From positions 1 to 64,000 of the forward strand of contig JAHLWZ010000801.1 of NCBI GenBank assembly GCA_020536535.1: a DNA stretch of 64,000 nt, written 5' to 3'. A program made the translations under genes and the position numbers. The notes under the pieces were generated by a model that was given only the letters and a program-made list of their open reading frames with translations, made no database searches and had not been told where the DNA came from. This document shows, one piece after another, positions 8,318 through 30,200 of this stretch; position 1 is the stretch's first letter, and each line of letters opens with the position of its first letter. The stretch is from Pelomyxa schiedti. Lineage: Eukaryota; Protista; Evosea.

Positions 8318-9754
8318 ATGTATTGGGACTCAGACTCACTCCCAATGAGGTTTGTCGGGTTGACTCCGTTCGTCCCTGTGTCTGCTGAACTCGTCAATCA
8401 TGCATTGCCACTGATACTTGATATCGCTCCCATCGGGACGATAGCGATGCTGACCCTGGTGAGGCCTCGATTGGCACCGATGGCCATCCCAATGTTGGGG
8501 GAGTTGAGACGATGTGTGAATGGGGAGTTGAGCGGATCAGTGTGGAAGAGGGCGCTCGAGTTGGCCGAACAGAATTGTGACTGTCACTATTACCGATCCC
8601 TCCTCCGGCATGCTCCGATCCCACTGACGCACTGGTGGCTCTCCATGAAGTTCAATTGGATGCGATCACGAGGTGCCGACTTGCCCACGTTCCGGATGCT
8701 GGACCTCATCCTCGAGAGAGCGGTGGACTTGGCGATTAGGTCGGCACCCAGGCATGCTCACGGACTATCGTTCGTGTACTATGCCTCCATCATCCTCGGC
8801 CTTCCAAAGTTTCCGGACTTGAGGGAGTGGTGTTATCTGGATGAGCTGATTCCGATACCGACCGTTGACAATACCTTCCATCATCGCATTCGCGGGAAAT
8901 GGTGTCCGCCCATTGCCAAGACCTTCTGTGGGAAGCCGGTCATCCTGAACTCGACACCAGACGAATATAATGATGCCCCCTCCCTGACAGATTCAATCCT
9001 ACGCGATGGGCGATTTGTGCATCCGACATGTCTGCAATCGCTGGAAGGACCTTGGTATGAGGTTGGAGTAACGTTGGCAGACTTCCCGAGAGGTGATGAC
9101 GCAGAAACCGAGATCGACCGTCTCAGGAGGAAGACGGGGAGGAACGCCTTAGTGAGACAGATCATATCACTCCACGGGAGGAGACCTGAAGCACTGCTCC
9201 CGCATCTTCACCGACTTGGGGATCATGCACTTGCCAGAGAGATCATCGACCGTTGCCCCGACAAGAACCGTCCTGAGTTGGTCGAATGCTTCCTGAACTC
9301 ATGTTGGGATAAGAGGATGATGGAGATCCCCAGTCTTCAGGATATCGCGACCAGGTCCCAATTCACCCCGCTCTCAGGTCGACCCCTGTTCTCCGTCGAT
9401 TGGTATATCACCCCGGATACGAGGCCGGAGATGGTGCAGACCATACTCGAGCACACGGACTTCTGGTACTGGATAGGGAGAGAGATAATGTGTGGACAAG
9501 TGGGCGTCGCTCGATCCCTCGTTGTGGGACTCTTCGGGGTCAACCCTTCGCTCGAATCCGAGGCTGCGAGGATGTGTGGAGCCTCTCGACTGTGTCGCTA
9601 CTTAGGAATGGTGGGGCATGAAGACATCGATGGATATCTTATCACTCGTGTTCACGATTGGGGAGACTGGAGCGATCGAGATATTGCCTGTTCTCCATCG
9701 GACGCGAATTGGCTGCGCTCCCTCTGCCTCCGCAGCCATGGACGTACTGGGTGA
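8318..9754 (+). CDS. intronless orphan protein, 478 aa; weak F-box-like N-terminus
   Basis: Single uninterrupted ORF, uniformly GC/CpG-richer than neighbouring gene bodies. No confident domain. Confidence 0.7.
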   Translation: MYWDSDSLPMRFVGLTPFVPVSAELVNHALPLILDIAPIGTIAMLTLVRPRLAPMAIPMLGELRRCVNGELSGSVWKRALELAEQNCDCHYYRSLLRHAPIPLTHWWLSMKFNWMRSRGADLPTFRMLDLILERAVDLAIRSAPRHAHGLSFVYYASIILGLPKFPDLREWCYLDELIPIPTVDNTFHHRIRGKWCPPIAKTFCGKPVILNSTPDEYNDAPSLTDSILRDGRFVHPTCLQSLEGPWYEVGVTLADFPRGDDAETEIDRLRRKTGRNALVRQIISLHGRRPEALLPHLHRLGDHALAREIIDRCPDKNRPELVECFLNSCWDKRMMEIPSLQDIATRSQFTPLSGRPLFSVDWYITPDTRPEMVQTILEHTDFWYWIGREIMCGQVGVARSLVVGLFGVNPSLESEAARMCGASRLCRYLGMVGHEDIDGYLITRVHDWGDWSDRDIACSPSDANWLRSLCLRSHGRTG

Positions 9755-16812: not shown

Positions 16813-18096
16813 TTAGGCCCACAACCCAATTACAGCCATGGCTGCAGCACCCAATGACATGGCCAATAAAAGCCAGTATCGTAGTAGTGGCTTTTTATCC
16901 AGAATTTCTTTGTGAAAGTCTTCAGCCACCATGTCCACTAGGGACATAAAGATTAAAATTCCACAACTCACACTGTCTAGAAGTCCTTGGGTGAGAAGAG
17001 ACTGATAAGAGTCCGCTTCGTTGATGAGTGAAAGGCCGATTCCAAGGGCTATTCCGCATGGCGTTGTGATGCTGAATACAGTGATCATGAAGAGCTGTCT
17101 TGGTACGGACAGTTGTGCTTCAGAGACACTTACACCCAGGGCTATGCCTTCAAAGAACTGATGGAATGTCAACGCAATGAGCAGTGCTTGTACGTCCGAT
17201 TCATCGGTTGAAGCACCCAAGGCCATTCCAATGATTATACTGTGTAATGCAATTCCAAATTCAAGTACATGAGCCACAACATATGCCTGAACTGTAACTC
17301 CAGGTTCTATGCAAGATTTGAGCACGAAGTTGGTGAAATTATGCTTGTAATGTAAAACACACTGAGCAGTGCATGTTCATGACCATGGTGTTCATGTTCG
17401 TGTTCATGTTCATGTTCAGGAGCATGGGCCTGGTTGGCTGTAGCATCATTTCCCTCTTCTACCAGATGTTTATACTGTATATTCTGTCTTGAATGAAACA
17501 AAGGTGCATGTAGTGTATTGAGTGTTGTAGTGCGAGTGTCCGCCTTCAAGCCTTTAGGGGGAGGGGAATGGAACGGATTTGAAGAAAGGCCACTAACATA
17601 ATAGTCATCATCATTTTTTCTCTTTCCAGGACTGGTGAGGGATTTTAAAGCGTGAGAGATTGCTTGCTCAAGAAGAAGCACAAGAATTATAGAGACCATA
17701 GAAATCAACAAGGATACAGGATATTCTACCTTGAAGTTATTTTAAGATGGGCTGTAGCTTTTGGAATTCGGGTAGCATACATCTGGCCAACATTCGGCCA
17801 ACAACTCCTGAGCGGATGGCATGATATGAATAAAGGCTGTGGCAATAACGACGCCAGCGCCAAACGTCTTCCCCAACATAAAAATCATGTGGTCAGCGGA
17901 GAGTTTAGTACATCCTCGTAATATCAACGGCGTGGAGACACCTTGCGAAAACCCAAATGAGGGAAAGAAATAACGCCAACTTTAACGCACCAGCACAACC
18001 ACAAAGCAGAATTGTGAAGATAGAAACAATCCGCAAAGTGAAGGATAAAGTATGAACTGGATCTATGTAGGAACTCTCACTGCCTTCACTCGACAT
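16813..18096 (-). CDS. ZIP-family (ZRT/IRT-like) zinc/iron transporter
   Basis: GKTFGAGVVIATAFIHIMP; His-rich loop HEHEHEHEHHGHEH; LEFGIALHSIIIG; LTFHQFFEGIALG; C-terminal MAVIGLWA. Confidence 0.93.
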
Positions 18097-18430: not shown

Positions 18431-21400
18431 ATGACTTCCGAAGCAAAAACAACCTCGACAGTTGTCACAGTCGTGCCTCCGACTGTAGATCATGCTGCCT
18501 CCAGGCCTGTCTCCGCCGTTGAAACCACTCTGCATTTGGTGATTTCTTTTTTTTTTTAATTTGGCAACCAGTAACACATGTAATGTTGTATTGACTTTTC
18601 CCCCTCCGAATCTATTATTAACAGAGGCTGAAAGAGCTCGATAGAATTTATGTGCCCCCACCACAGCCTGACGAGAGATACTCCTTTGAACTGTTTGGAC
18701 ACACTTACAACTTCGACGGTCTGAAGCAACTTCTTGCTGCTGCCGACTTTGCCAAGTCGGGCGATCAAGGCCTCGTCATTGTCACACATGTGGGACGAGA
18801 GGCAGCGAGGCAGGCACTGAGCGGCCTCACTCTTCAGCACATGTAGCCCACACTCCCACACCACCGGCATCGCGGTTTTTTTTTTTTCTTTTCCTTTTGG
18901 TTCTCAATTGCTCTCCCTGTATCTAGATATGATCACCCACTACTGGATGAAAGAGGCCAAGTTGACTCTGTTATGCGTGTGAACTACGATCTTGATATGG
19001 ATGTATGGCCAACTATTCGTAACATGACAGTGGGTCAGCTAAAAGACCGTGAGCTCATAGTCCTTCTGCCAAATCAGGGAATTCTTTGTTAACGTTCACA
19101 CCAGATTTGTTGAACAGTGATGCACCAGAGATTGCGAGAGTTGGGCGAGGGTTAACAGGTTGAGGTTCAAAGCCATTTCAGCCTCCCTCACTTTTTTTTC
19201 CCCTCTTGCTAGGTGTCATGATTGCTGCAGTTGCTAAGTTAATGGATATTCATGAGTTGATTTGCGTACCAAAGCGAATATCATTCCCATCAAAAGCTAG
19301 ATCCACATTAGGTGTTCCTGGCACTCTTTCTGCCCGACTTCAACCCAATCACCAAATGGATGATGTTGATGGCATTTCCTTCCTAACGTGTGTTTATCTT
19401 GTTGCTTCTTGTATGTTCTACCATTCACTACTGGAATTTTAATGTTATAACAAAATCAATTATGTCTGCATACTTTATCCAGTAGTGTTGCAGTGAGGAA
19501 AATGGGTACTGACATAATTAGATACGTGGGACTCTCAATGGGAGTTGGTGACTGCCTCATTGGAGTTAATCCAGCAATTGACACACCTGACAGCATGTCT
19601 CGAGTACTTACTCGCCTCAATTCAATCCGGGAGAAATTTGATATTCCTACACAAATTTGCACATTAGGACATGTTCGTACACAATTGGCTTGCATTGAGC
19701 GAGGTTCCAGTTTTATTGCACAATACAACTATTCACCTTCAAAGGTGCTCCTTTGGACATCTTGTTCCAAAGTATTGCAGGGACAGATCGCGTTTTATCC
19801 GAGGAGTTTGATGTCACTGTTGACTTGCTTGACAGTGCTTATTATACAATGCTGAGAAATGCAAAAAGAACTGGTATAACAAAGAATTTCATGTATTTTG
19901 AGACAGGTCAAGGAAGGTATTCGCGTGGGTGTCTCTTTGTAGCTTACTTGCACCTCCAGTGAAATGACCTATGGAAAAAACAATGGAATTGATATGACAA
20001 CTTGCGAGGTTTGTCTATTTCTGTTTCGTACTCAATGTTCATCAACAACCAAAGGCTTTGAAGTATGGACTTGCAAGAAGATATTCTCCCTTTATGGTCA
20101 ATAACGTAACAGGTATGTCATTTGGAGATATTCTCCCTTTATGGTCAAATTTAAAATAACTTAGCTTCACAGGCTTTATTGGCCCAGAAACTCATAAGGA
20201 CAGCATGCAACTTATTGTTTCTAGTCTTCAAGATAACTTCTGTGGCAAAGTTCTGGGGCTTCCAATGGGCATGGATCCGTGCTTTACTTTGCATTCACAA
20301 ATTACTATCGAAGCTCAGCAAGTAATCTTGTTCTGAATTCTCATGTAAACCCTAATGTCTACCAATAGATGGCTACACAGTTGTGCACCGCTGCTGGAAC
20401 AGCATTTTTTATGGATGTATACTTGGTTAGTACAAAGCACAAATGTAACTTCAACTGACTTTGTTCTCTCAAGAATTCTGATAGGATGCTTGGCTATTTT
20501 ACAACAAGTGGCCATAACGTGCAGACTCTGCGGGAGGTAACCGAACCTGAGTCGTCACACGAATCTAAATGTAACACCCACTTTCAGGTGCATGCACTGC
20601 AACCGGCAGCAGAGTTTGCAAAATGGGGTATCAAACGAGGCATATTTGTGGAAAAGGATGGTCTAATCAAGCGTGGTCCCAACTGGGGGAACCCAAGAAT
20701 CTTCTGTGAAAATGAAGAAGAATTCCAGAGGCTAAAGAAGGTTTCTCTTCCTCGTTTCCTTCCTTGGGTTTATGTTTTCGCTAGCCCACCAACATGCTTT
20801 GGGGGCTTGAAAGTGCAGGACCCTGCCCTGCTAATAAGGTTCAACGAACTATGCGCGCAAGTATACCATCTCTCAGACACAACGTCACCCCTCACATACA
20901 AAGATATGGAAATCGCAAAGGAGGCTGTTTTTTCCGAATTAAATTTAGCCAAGCTCTCTGCTTTTGAGTATGGATTGCCCTTTTTCCACTTGAACCAACC
21001 TGTTCAGGTTCCGTATTATTGGAACCCAAGCTCCTTCCAAGGAAAAGTACTTGGGAGATCCCATTCTTGGGCAGAAGTTGGATCCCACTTCAAGAACAAA
21101 ATTAACTGCAGAGAGTATGGACATTCAGGTTCTCTTACTATCTTCATCACCAAGTTAACAAGATGCAATAGATTGTTATATCTGACGGCCTGAGTGCCGA
21201 AGCCATACATTACAATGTACCAATTATGTTGCCTATTCTTGAAGAGACTCTAAAAGCTTCCGGGTATCTCTAAATTTGTCCGCTTTTGTTTTCTGAATGA
21301 GTCCATAGCGCACGCCTGGGAAAACTCATAGTTGCCCGATACGCCCGCGTGAAGCTGATAGAGGACCTTGGGGCCATTCTCAACCCCAAAGTTGTGGTTA

Positions 21401-21783
21401 TGCTCGTAGGCGAACGCCCCGGAGGCGGCGCTGATGCCTCCCGCGCACTCAGTGCTTATGTTGCCTACCACATAACTGATCCAGAAACACGAAATGCAGC
21501 ATTACGGCACAACAAAGGTGCATCACCCAGTGGGTGGGAATACAATGTGGTCAACAGTATCTACTCTGGGGGTCAAGACCCAGAATCGGCAGCCGAAGTT
21601 GTATCAACCCTTGTATTGAACATGCTCAGGCTGAGAGCAGGCGGAAACAGGCTGTCAGCCCTGCTGGAGGCTGAAACGAAGGCAAAGAGCTCTGGTGGAG
21701 GAGTCAGTGGGAGAGCTGAGGCCCTTCCGCCAAAGCAGGAAACACCATCAGCCTCCCCCACCCCCTCTTCAACAAAGAGTTAG
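18431..21783 (+). CDS. eutBC: ethanolamine ammonia-lyase, fused large (EutB) and small (EutC) subunits, ~17 introns
   Basis: EutB motifs: LFGHTYNFDGLKQLLAAADFAKSGD, TLGVPGTLSARLQPNH, GLSMGVGDCLIGVNP, KFDIPTQICTLGHV, LFQSIAG, MYFETGQGS, YGLARRYSPFMVNNVTGFIGPE, GKVLGLPMGMDPC, MLGYFTTS. These continue without a stop into EutC motifs: SAGP, AKEAVFSEL, IVISDGLSAEAI, RYARVKLIEDLG, VMLVGERPG, SIYSGG. Confidence 0.93.
20079..20148 (+). repeat. 23-bp exact direct repeat, one copy in an exon and one in the following intron of eutBC
   Basis: agatattctccctttatggtcaa at 20079-20101 and 20126-20148. Confidence 0.9.
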
Positions 21784-21907: not shown

Positions 21908-23083
21908 CTAGTACCTCAAAAAAGAGCCTCCCACAGACAGGAGGCCTTGTTGCTCCAAGGAAGGCAATATTGCTGTGCCGGGAGTAGAGCAGCTGGGGGT
22001 TGTTGCATTTGTGGAAGGGGAGGATGGGCTTGCTGTTGGCGGGGGTTTCACTGCAACTGCTACCGCGGCGGCAACGGCTGCTGCTACTGCGGCTGCTGAG
22101 GGTTTGGGAGTTGGTGGTGGGGTGACAGTGATACTGGGGGGGAGGGAGTTGTTTGCAGTGGTGGGCGGTATGCTAAGTGAAAGCATGGAGGCAAGGGAGG
22201 AGGAAAAGTTGCGAGTTGGGCCATTACGGGCGGTAGAGGGTGGAGAACCACATGGGGATGTGATGTCCTCAATCCCGTTAGGGGGAGAAGAGGATAGCCC
22301 AGACTTGGTGTGTATGGCGGCGGTATGTGAGGCTGTAGTAGAAGTAACAGAAGAGCTCAGCGGAAGTGTTGTAGTAAACACATTTGATATTGGTGTGCCG
22401 GATAGCACAGTTGGTGACAACAGTGGTGATGTGGGTGCACCCACACACTTCTGTTGGTGCTTCTGTAATGTTTGTTGAATACCACTCTGCTGACTGGTTG
22501 TGGTCGGGAGCTGTTGCACTGGTAGAGGTGGTTGCAGGGGTTTTGGTACCACAACGTCTTGTCTCATTGATGTACGTCGCACCTTTGCGCGTTTGTTTTG
22601 AAACCATATCTGTATCCTGCGCGTGGACATTCCCAACTCTGCAGCAAGGTGAAGCCGTGTCTGTTGGTTTGGCATGGTATTTGTTTGAAACATCATTTCT
22701 AGCAGGTCTAACTGCTCGGGGCTAGTGCGTTGGCGCTTAGGCTTTGGAGCTGGCATTGGGGGGTGAGGTACAGGGGTATGTAAGGTAGCTGGTGCGGTGG
22801 GACTTTGAGACAGCTTTAAGAGTAATACGGCAGCATCGGTAAGGTCACTGTGTAATAGTGAATGAGGGTGAAATGGCATTCAAGACGAAGATGTGAGGGA
22901 AAATAAGATATGGTGGGGGTGGTACTCCTCGTCCTCGGTCTCTCCTTGAGGAGCATCCTCATCCTCTTCTTCATCATCTACTTCCTCTTCACTTAGAGAA
23001 TCCAGCTCCTCCGGGAAGCGCTTCCGTGGGACGGAAAGTGGCCCACAGCGCATCACCGAAGAGCCATTAACAACCCCTGACAT
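21908..23083 (-). CDS. homeobox transcription factor (two exons)
   Basis: PKRQRTSPEQLDLLEMMFQTNTMPNQQTRLHLAAELGMSTRRIQIWFQNKRAKVRR, a canonical homeodomain with Q50. Acidic first exon in ORF 22880-23083. Confidence 0.92.
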
Positions 23084-27261: not shown

Positions 27262-30200
27262 TTAAAAGAGACCAGTCTCCTTCTTGAGGGTTGTTTGTTT
27301 CCATGGTGGGAGTTTGTTGAAACTGTCCTTGGTCATCCCAAACGTAGCCATGAATTCTGTTGGGCTCAAAAAGAAGGGAATTCGTGTAGAATCCACAGCT
27401 GCCGGAAGTGGACGTGCCTGTAGAACTGTTTCATTGAGAGTGAGCCAAATAGTGTAATGCTAGGTGAGGAAACCTGAAAGAGGGAAGAATGGTTCCGTTT
27501 CTGCTTGCTGTGTCACAGCCGGGGTTGCAGGAGGTGAAACCGGTGTTGGGGGTTTGACTTTCAGTCCTGCAAATGTTTTTTGAGTTGAAATTTGAGGGCT
27601 TGAGGACACAGGGGCTGTGCCTCCTTCTGTATTGCTAAGTTTTCGCCGCGGTGAGGGCGAAGAAGAAGACGGCTGGCTTCTATCGGGTGGTTGCTGGTGG
27701 ATTTGCGATGTTGCCAGTGGTGGTGTAGGAGCATGCCTGGGTGAATGATTTTGTTGTATTACAGATTGGGAGTTTTGTAGTGGAGCTGAGGGAGTAGGTG
27801 GTTGGTGTAGAAGCGGCTGCGAAGTTGATATTGGCGTTTGCTGTGAGGTAGCCGGCTGGGCCTGAGAACCAGTCGGTTGTGAAGGTGATGGGGATGACGA
27901 TTGTACAGGGTTCTGCCTGAGTATCTGTCTAGTTTGTGACGGCTGGAGCTGGCCTGGCGATTGTGGCTGGGTTGGTGTGCGTGGTTGTTGTCTAGGTGTT
28001 TGGGATGGCCCTTGTGGGTGTGCTTGAGGCTGAACTTGCTGGGGTGGCTTTCGTTCGATGTGGCTCTTGGGCAGTGCTGTAGGACTAGCTCCCTCTTCAG
28101 GTTTGTCAAGAACCATAATTTCATTGCAGTCTTCAACCAAAATTTGCACCAGGTCCACAAGATCTAAGCATTTTACAGTCGTTTCTACTGTTACTACCTA
28201 GTAAAGGATCAATTTTTTTTTAAAAAAAACCTCTAACCTGGGGACGAAGAATGGCTGGAGTAAAAACAATACTTAAATTTCTTGGTGTCATCATACTTGA
28301 AGCAGAATGTGTGGCAGCAGTTGATATAAACTGAAGCAGAAAAGAAAGTACATTTCTGATTGCCAATATGGAAAAACATGAGTAGACAGATGGTAGAAAG
28401 GAAGTCAGACTTGTTACATGTAGGCATGGAAGTAAGCATGGTCTTCATTGAGGAAAGTTTTTCAGCATTGGAAATCGTCTTGTTGTCAGCAAGAGTTACC
28501 ATTTTATCATAAACAGGGTAGGGAAATAGTGGCTCCAGAAGAGTAGAGAAGAAAGACTTGAATGTCTATTTTGAAAATGTTCAGCAAAAGAGCCATATCC
28601 AGGATATGGGTAAAAACGAAAGCCCCAAACCCTAATAAATAAATATATAATGTTGGTTTTTTTCAGGCCTTGCCGAAGCGACAGAATGTATGCCATATTC
28701 TCCAATGATATCTACACCCTCCCACTTGGACTCATTGAAGGCACGTTGTAACTCTTCTATCTTTTGTTTGTTTCCCGCTTCACGAAATATCCCTTCTGTC
28801 CCAAGATGGGGAAGAAGGAGGTTTGCCAGTATTTGTAGAACTGACGGAACACCGTTGGAGCTATCTCTTATCACCAATTCGCTCAAGTCACCTCCAAAAA
28901 CCAGTGCCGGTGAGACACTGCTTTGAATCAGAAATGAAATTTGAGTTTCCATTTCAGCAGCTTGACTTGGAGTTGAAAGAATCATCAAGATACTTCTCTG
29001 AGGTGATACGAGCATAATGGAAGTGGCTCCACCATCGGTAGGTGGGACAGGCTCGAGTTTCACTGTTTTCAGCCACAACAACTCTTTGGCATTATATGAA
29101 ATGCGATTACGCTTTGCTAGTGCAAGAACGTCATTGAACAGAAAGAAATGTCGCTTGCTCTCTTTGTGCAGCAAGTGGCTTTTACTGACTATAGTGCAGT
29201 CTCCTTCACTGATAAAACGCCGGCTGGATTCTCCTTCCAGTGCCTTACTGTTGGCAAGGTTTTTAAGAATGCTTACCACCATACTTCTATTGCTTGACAT
29301 TTCATAGCTCACATAGAGAACCTAGTGACGGCTTTAGTAATGAGTAAAACGAACTAGTAGTCCAACCAACCATGTTGACGCGCTGTAACAGGGTAGTGGC
29401 AGTAGCTAACGACTCGAGTTCAGTTGGAGGGATCAAGTGCGAGAAGGCATTATTGTGGGCCAACTTAGCAGTAGCCTCCATGAGACTTTGCATTGATATT
29501 TCGTACTTTGAAATTTGCTGAAGTGGAGCTGGTAGAAGGTCAATGAGGCGAGCACCTTCAAGGTCACCTTCCAATTCCACTTGGGCCAAAAAGGTGGCAA
29601 ACCGAGGATTAGTCTGGCTCAGCATGATTACCGTCTGCACGGCAATGGGGACTAAATCATTATTGTTAAAAGAACACTCCAAAAACGAATAGAGAATGAA
29701 GGGAGTGGGAAAAAGAAAAGAGGAGTGTGAATAGAACAAATAAGAATTGTTCCGGAAACAAACCATTTTTGGAATACTGGCCATAAGCAGACAGCTGAGG
29801 AGCCACACTTGTGAACACCTCACCCACATTGCACACAAATGGCCAGTGAGTGGAATATACCTCATCCAGCTTCTTGTAAATCGTGTCATCAATGGCAGCA
29901 ACTGCATCCAGCGGCGAGAAAATTGCGGCGATTTCCTGCCCCGTCAGCAACGGCGCCTTGGTCTCGAGGGACTGCCTCAGCGGCGCAGCGAAGCCGTCCC
30001 TCAGCGCCGACACCTTTCGCCGAAAAGTGATTTCGACCTTCATCAAATCCCTCAGAGCGTCGTTCCTCGCCCTTAGTTCCGCAGATTTCCACAGTTTCAT
30101 CATCCTGGGCACTACCGTAGGGTGAGCCTGGGGCTGTGACTGGGACTGAGACTGAGGGGATGACGAGATGCAGAAGGAGCGGCGGACGCGGCGGCCGCGG

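Follow-up and report, generated by a model that had tools for sequence, protein, structure and literature searches.

Eukaryotes have long been credited with few B12 enzymes. The apparent presence, in an amoeba, of an intron-rich gene that joins both subunits of ethanolamine ammonia-lyase (EAL), EutB and EutC, in a single chain raises the question of whether this is a working host gene, whether its product would act on ethanolamine, where it came from and what it might do for its owner. The locus lies in a stretch of 64,000 nucleotides from Pelomyxa schiedti (positions 1 to 64,000 of contig JAHLWZ010000801.1, here C801), which we refer to as the window and whose coordinates are used below unless another contig is named. 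The first-pass annotation of this DNA, made from the letters alone, had supposed a probably anaerobic protist as the host, and P. schiedti is indeed an anaerobic amoeba.

Gene structure, copies and host setting

Placement of donor and acceptor sites on the window sequence gave a gene at 18431-21783 of the forward strand, running from ATG to TAG through 18 exons and 17 introns. All 17 introns are of the GT-AG type and are 40-134 nt long, much as the first-pass annotation had proposed when it read about 17 short introns and an in-frame EutB-EutC. The coding sequence (2388 nt, 795 aa) is free of stops up to its final codon at 21781-21783. The protein is identical at 795 of 795 residues to KAH3757468.1/KAH3757505.1, which GenBank names ethanolamine ammonia-lyase by automatic annotation only, and intronless bacterial fused proteins align to it end to end with 50-57% identity. 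As both comparisons agree, the splicing pattern is not a product of chance, and the gene structure is a homology-supported model.

Exon 1 (18431-18538, aa 1-36) encodes an N-terminal extension that is without counterpart in most bacterial relatives and has a pLDDT below 50; it is the exon with the least homology support and is present in the GenBank model. Exon 2 (18625-18842) opens both EutB and the region common with bacterial fused proteins. EutB continues through exons 3 (18927-19048), 4 (19105-19158), 5 (19213-19387), 6 (19522-19703), 7 (19745-19916), 8 (19960-20008), 9 (20055-20112), 10 (20173-20321), 11 (20369-20425) and 12 (20474-20536) into exon 13 (20588-20740), which holds its end and the EutB/EutC junction (residues 499-527). 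EutC follows in exons 14 (20785-20860), 15 (20904-20967), 16 (21008-21128), 17 (21172-21263, with a DGLS motif) and 18 (21309-21783), the last comprising the EutC core with a GERPG motif, a disordered tail from about residue 770 and the stop codon. In an exon-by-exon search, exons 2, 5, 6, 7 and 10 matched Pfam EutB (PF06751) in profile order, four of them above the cut-off on their own, and exons 16, 17 and 18 matched Pfam EutC (PF05985), also in profile order, exon 18 alone scoring 65 bits against a cut-off of 25.8. A 23-nt piece of exon 9 (20079-20101) recurs exactly inside intron 9 (20125-20147).

The genes around the locus are ordinary eukaryotic ones, i.e. a ZIP zinc transporter upstream (16813-17927, reverse strand), a homeodomain protein gene downstream (21908-22879, reverse strand) and, further downstream, a PH/RhoGAP gene (28632-29312, reverse strand). 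The window also contains an intronless 478-aa ORF without a Pfam match (8318-9754, forward strand).

Searching the whole genome, we found four loci that match EutB and EutC. One of them (at about C801:117,300-120,650) is the window gene's exact twin in inverted orientation. The contig (C801:1-139094) is an inverted repeat with arms of 69,455 bp around a 172-bp spacer (69456-69627), and the window lies in its first arm; a sample of about 35 kb of the arms revealed no mismatch, and their ends are 99.8% identical. The genome was amplified with phi29 (PMC8887013). Such a near-perfect palindrome in phi29-amplified DNA makes us doubt that the twin is a real duplicate, and the palindrome is likely an amplification chimera. 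The repeat probably also means that every window gene is annotated twice in GenBank. We thus count three real copies.

The two paralogues, on C1129 (KAH3732714.1) and C899, both splice to stop-free proteins. They are 54% and 53% identical to the window protein, respectively, and 64% identical to each other. Each has 17 introns in its EutBC part, and the pair has 14 intron sites in common exactly (15 when one adjacent column is counted), whereas the window gene has none in common with either. The window gene and the C1129/C899 pair therefore appear to have gained their introns largely separately. For five of 16 window introns, the paralogues have a same-phase intron 2-3 codons away, where 0.9 would be expected (p about 0.001, with a distance threshold picked after looking), and intron replacement or sliding may have taken place. 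The introns concerned begin at 19388, 19917, 20426, 20861 and 21129.

The GenBank model KAH3732714.1 deserves two remarks. It omits about 27 codons (C1129:4913-4834) that our homology-guided model reads as an exon, and it carries a 478-aa N-terminal part (P0133 aa 1-475, C1129:6170-7688) with no match in Pfam or the Atlas. We considered a fused EutA, but this part did not match a profile of 32 EutA sequences; it is probably a merged upstream gene.

The published genome (52.4 Mb in 5337 scaffolds, 7.4 introns per gene) derives from whole-genome-amplified single cells taken from a polyxenic culture (PMC8887013). This provenance, together with the artefact-like palindrome of C801, could suggest that the locus is a bacterial contaminant, or a pseudogene in decay, and no functioning gene of the host. 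We regard this as extremely improbable. Seventeen spliceosomal introns interrupt an open frame, the flanking genes are those of a eukaryote, the best bacterial relative is at most 57% identical, and two further intron-rich paralogues are stop-free. The introns within an open frame bear out the domestication that had been proposed for this gene: it is a real, intact and domesticated member of the EAL family.

The substrate site and position 362

The single-chain EAL-family identity suggested earlier was upheld by Pfam, with EutB and EutC in order, by matches in the PDB and by a fold overlay. A PDB search matched 3ABO chain A (3abo_A) over aa 58-498 (E 2.6e-96) and EutC chains over aa 530-752 (E 4e-22), the regions over which E. 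coli EutB and EutC match the window protein. This search returned two-chain enzymes only and no solved member of the fused subfamily. The AlphaFold model of the window protein, built with 145 sequences, has a pLDDT of 89.3 and a pTM of 0.88, with disorder at the ends only. In Foldseek it overlays 3abo_A with an rmsd of 1.9 and a TM-score by target of 0.95, and 3abo_B with a TM-score of 0.80; its fold is much nearer to EAL than to diol dehydratase.

All six motifs named in the first-pass annotation are present, i.e. SARLQPN (starting at residue 207), GVNP (240), YFETGQG (337), GFIGPE (380), MGMDPC (411) and LGYFTT (454). Q162, N193, F329, D362, M392, L402 and Y404 are substrate-site residues of E. 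coli EAL, whose structure and mutagenesis point to the carboxylate of Asp362 as the group that binds the substrate amine. In the alignment, all nine E. coli positions from R160 through Y404 have identical counterparts, so that the substrate site is intact as had been claimed. These are R209 (19335-19337, E. coli R160) and Q211 (19341-19343, Q162) in exon 5, N242 (19568-19570, N193) in exon 6, E339 (19900-19902, E287) in exon 7, F381 (F329) and D414 (20274-20276, D362) in exon 10, M444 (M392) in exon 11, and L454 (L402) and Y456 (20495-20497, Y404) in exon 12. E287 and R160 are catalytic in EAL (PMC4155860).

The protein scores below the NCBIfam cut-offs for EutB (NF011649, 446 versus 554 bits) and EutC (NF003971, 141 versus 230 bits). 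The shortfall is equally large for two bacterial fused proteins, which indicates that only EAL of the canonical two-gene type is covered by these models. The window protein has the layout of the fused subfamily, i.e. one ORF, the common junction motif and full-length similarity, while 29 of 223 positions highly conserved in that subfamily are altered in it.

One of the substrate-site positions sets the window protein apart from most of its relatives. Among 253 bacterial members of the fused subfamily, position 362 (E. coli numbering) is Ala in 227, Gly in 14, Ser in 9 and Asp in 3, so that the Asp is replaced in 250. The window protein and the C1129 paralogue have Asp, and the C899 paralogue has Ala. 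By keeping Asp362 the window protein is the more canonical EAL, and the position raises the question of whether the rest of the fused subfamily are true EALs; no assayed member of the subfamily was found. Among the bacterial fused proteins, of which L073-L076 and P0078 are examples, the L074 locus has as its neighbours genes for glutamine-synthetase-like, peptidase C26, iron alcohol dehydrogenase, aldehyde dehydrogenase and FGGY kinase proteins. A metagenome scan for nearer relatives of the Asp type returned one ordinary bacterial gene of the Ala type only, and among viruses there were four matches at 40%, all of them to EutB only.

It might be argued that the window protein is a B12 radical eliminase of the EAL family with another substrate, such as a vicinal amino alcohol or a diol, and that the whole fused subfamily has shifted. 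The loss of the Asp362 carboxylate in nearly all bacterial members and in the C899 paralogue points this way, as do three paralogues at 53-64% identity, which suggest divided roles. However, the window protein has Asp at this position along with every other substrate contact, the bacterial neighbours include EutA and, once, the ethanolamine transporter EutH, and the fold is far from that of diol dehydratase. We therefore consider another substrate unlikely for the window protein, and judging from its sequence and modelled structure we predict, with fair confidence, that it is an active ethanolamine ammonia-lyase. The Asp/Ala split between the paralogues, taken with hundreds of bacterial fusions, offers a cheap and direct test of whether the subfamily as a whole is EAL.

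Bacterial fusions and ancestry of the gene

The single chain is not an invention of the amoeba. Exon 6, used as the query against bacterial genomes, gave 50 loci, and at 32 of them both halves lie in a single ORF, most of these being 47-55% identical to the window model over its length. Their hosts belong to Planctomycetota, Bdellovibrionota, Pseudomonadota, Myxococcota and others; bacterial fused EutBC also occurs in Desulfobacterota. Thousands of further bacterial fused EutBC proteins exist, the best match being 57% identical. The junction of the window protein has the same motif and length as in the bacterial fused proteins, which rules out a eukaryotic origin of the fusion and answers the earlier question of whether the closest bacterial homologs are already fused. 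The idea that a linker had replaced the EutC targeting extension in the amoeba thus falls, since both the linker and the loss of the extension arose in bacteria already and were inherited by Pelomyxa.

Quick maximum-likelihood trees place the fused subfamily and the three Pelomyxa copies on one branch (SH-aLRT 100), with the three copies outside all 51 sampled bacterial members (SH-aLRT 99) and C1129 and C899 as a pair (SH-aLRT 99). As all three lie outside the sampled bacterial clade, the donor cannot be identified by name; the outside placement may be due to long branches being drawn to the outgroup. A constraint grouping the three copies was not rejected (p-AU 0.96, LG+G4, 34 rows), and its likelihood was higher than that of the free quick search. 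Judging from these sequences, one old acquisition followed by duplication would fit, and so would two transfers out of one lineage. Two candidate eukaryotic relatives, P0137 and P0162, turned out to be bacterial long-read fragments. The bacterial-type origin assumed by the first-pass annotation stands, and it follows from the wide bacterial and near-absent eukaryotic distribution of the family rather than from nesting.

A bolder scenario, which we consider doubtful, is that the Pelomyxa copies represent an early branch of fused EutBC that has no sampled bacterial survivors and kept Asp362 as the ancestral state. Most fusions of bacteria, and C899, would have lost it and taken up another substrate or mechanism. 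The amoeba would then have two B12 radical eliminase activities, no EutA and an undescribed eukaryotic means of renewing the cofactor.

Cobalamin supply, metabolic role and known systems

EAL is inactivated in turnover and bacteria rely on EutA (PMC5821096). The absence of eutA and shell genes from the window, noted at first reading, was confirmed and extends to the genome: neither EutA (PF06277, two queries) nor a microcompartment shell protein (PF00936) was matched, nor was an adenosyltransferase of the CobA type, absences that weigh little in a fragmented, intron-rich assembly about 82% complete. Nor does the window protein have the EutC targeting peptide of the eut microcompartment system. 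The genome search did recover an adenosyltransferase of the PduO/MMAB type in two exon-like pieces on C850, in answer to the earlier suggestion to look for one, as well as MetH pieces on C73. Other B12-related genes were seen as well. An intron-split gene at C939:306-3642 (L070, reverse strand) has its best match in IcmF, a fused isobutyryl-CoA mutase/MeaB GTPase, rather than in ordinary methylmalonyl-CoA mutase, which is unusual in a eukaryote, and C996 carries an intron-containing stand-alone corrinoid protein resembling the MtgC/MtbC methyltransferase partners (L081:1123-2322, reverse strand). Published symbiont transcript tables include genes for cobalamin synthesis and binding, so the symbionts might be a source of B12.

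Going by the known chemistry of EAL, adenosylcobalamin would be held where the barrel of EutB faces the EutC domain. Binding of the substrate would shift E339 (E287) and cause cleavage of the Co-C bond, and the adenosyl radical would abstract a hydrogen from ethanolamine, upon which the amine would migrate and ammonia and acetaldehyde leave. We suggest an ancient acquisition, probably a single one, of an already fused bacterial gene, which was duplicated before or during intron gain. The enzyme might work free in the cytosol without a microcompartment or EutA, spent cofactor being replaced through release or protein turnover, and the host could adenosylate a corrinoid that it obtains from prey or endosymbionts. 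The benefit would chiefly be ammonia from the phosphatidylethanolamine of ingested cells, and acetaldehyde could be reduced by iron alcohol dehydrogenases, of which the genome encodes several.

Alternatively, an EAL could serve carbon and energy metabolism, its acetaldehyde passing to acetyl-CoA or acetate, or it could feed acetaldehyde or ethanol and ammonia to endosymbionts. P. schiedti has syntrophic bacterial and methanogenic symbionts and gains ATP from acetyl-CoA (PMC10579272), which favours such a use. On the other hand, the search for AdhE or an acetaldehyde dehydrogenase, also suggested at first reading, succeeded for one half only: the AdhE profile matched in its alcohol-dehydrogenase part (511-758 of 872), and the acetylating aldehyde-dehydrogenase half was not found, a weak absence given an exon-wise search of the same incomplete assembly. 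As no acetylating aldehyde dehydrogenase was found, nitrogen salvage seems the likelier role, and we hold carbon or energy use to be rather unlikely, although less so than a change of substrate.

The classical EAL of E. coli and Salmonella (PDB 3ABO, EC 4.3.1.7) resembles the window protein in both subunit folds and in the substrate-site residues listed above. It differs in being encoded by two genes, only 39% and 30% identical to the respective parts of the window protein, in being accompanied by EutA, EutT, EutE and shell genes, and in the N-terminal microcompartment-loading extension of EutC (about 80 residues ahead of the aligned part). The bacterial fused EutBC proteins (about 730 aa) are much closer, given their single chain, the same junction motif and length and their end-to-end identity, and no shell genes adjoin the four loci examined. 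They differ from the window gene in being intronless, in lacking the disordered N- and C-terminal tails, in having nearly always Ala, Gly or Ser at position 362, and in their eutA gene: 24 of the 32 fused genes have one at a distance of 4 kb or less, and at the four closest loci examined it is the gene immediately upstream. By its published description, Pelobacter carbinolicus provides a parallel to the window gene in this last respect, since it has fused eutBC1/2 genes without eutA and grows on ethanolamine (PMC3543383).

The bacterial fusion, one eukaryotic fused EutBC and the GenBank gene name are thus already known. No mention of the Pelomyxa gene was found in the P. schiedti papers and supplements searched, and in the literature searched we found no description of the three real copies, the intron pattern of the paralogues, their deep placement or the Asp/Ala split. 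What Pelomyxa contributes is an intron-laden, three-copy family in a eukaryote and a single-chain, EutA-free predicted EAL well suited to expression and assay. It also contributes to the view that anaerobic protists with symbionts make heavy use of B12.

The novelty first ascribed to the single-chain enzyme of an anaerobic protist has to be given up in favour of Anaeramoeba flamelloides, for which a laterally acquired fused EutBC was presented as new to eukaryotes, with EutE absent and a nitrogen role proposed (PMC11550330, Suppl. Note 3). No sequence of this protein was among the matches found, so the likeness is drawn from the published description: both hosts are anaerobic, symbiont-bearing amoeboid protists with a lateral EutB-EutC fusion, a host adenosyltransferase and no EutE. 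By this analogy, the arrangement and the nitrogen role proposed for Anaeramoeba would match our proposal for Pelomyxa. The two differ in that Anaeramoeba belongs to Metamonada and Pelomyxa to Amoebozoa. EAL is rare in eukaryotes, and as far as the literature searched shows, Pelomyxa is, after Anaeramoeba, the second protist lineage to have it, and the first amoebozoan.
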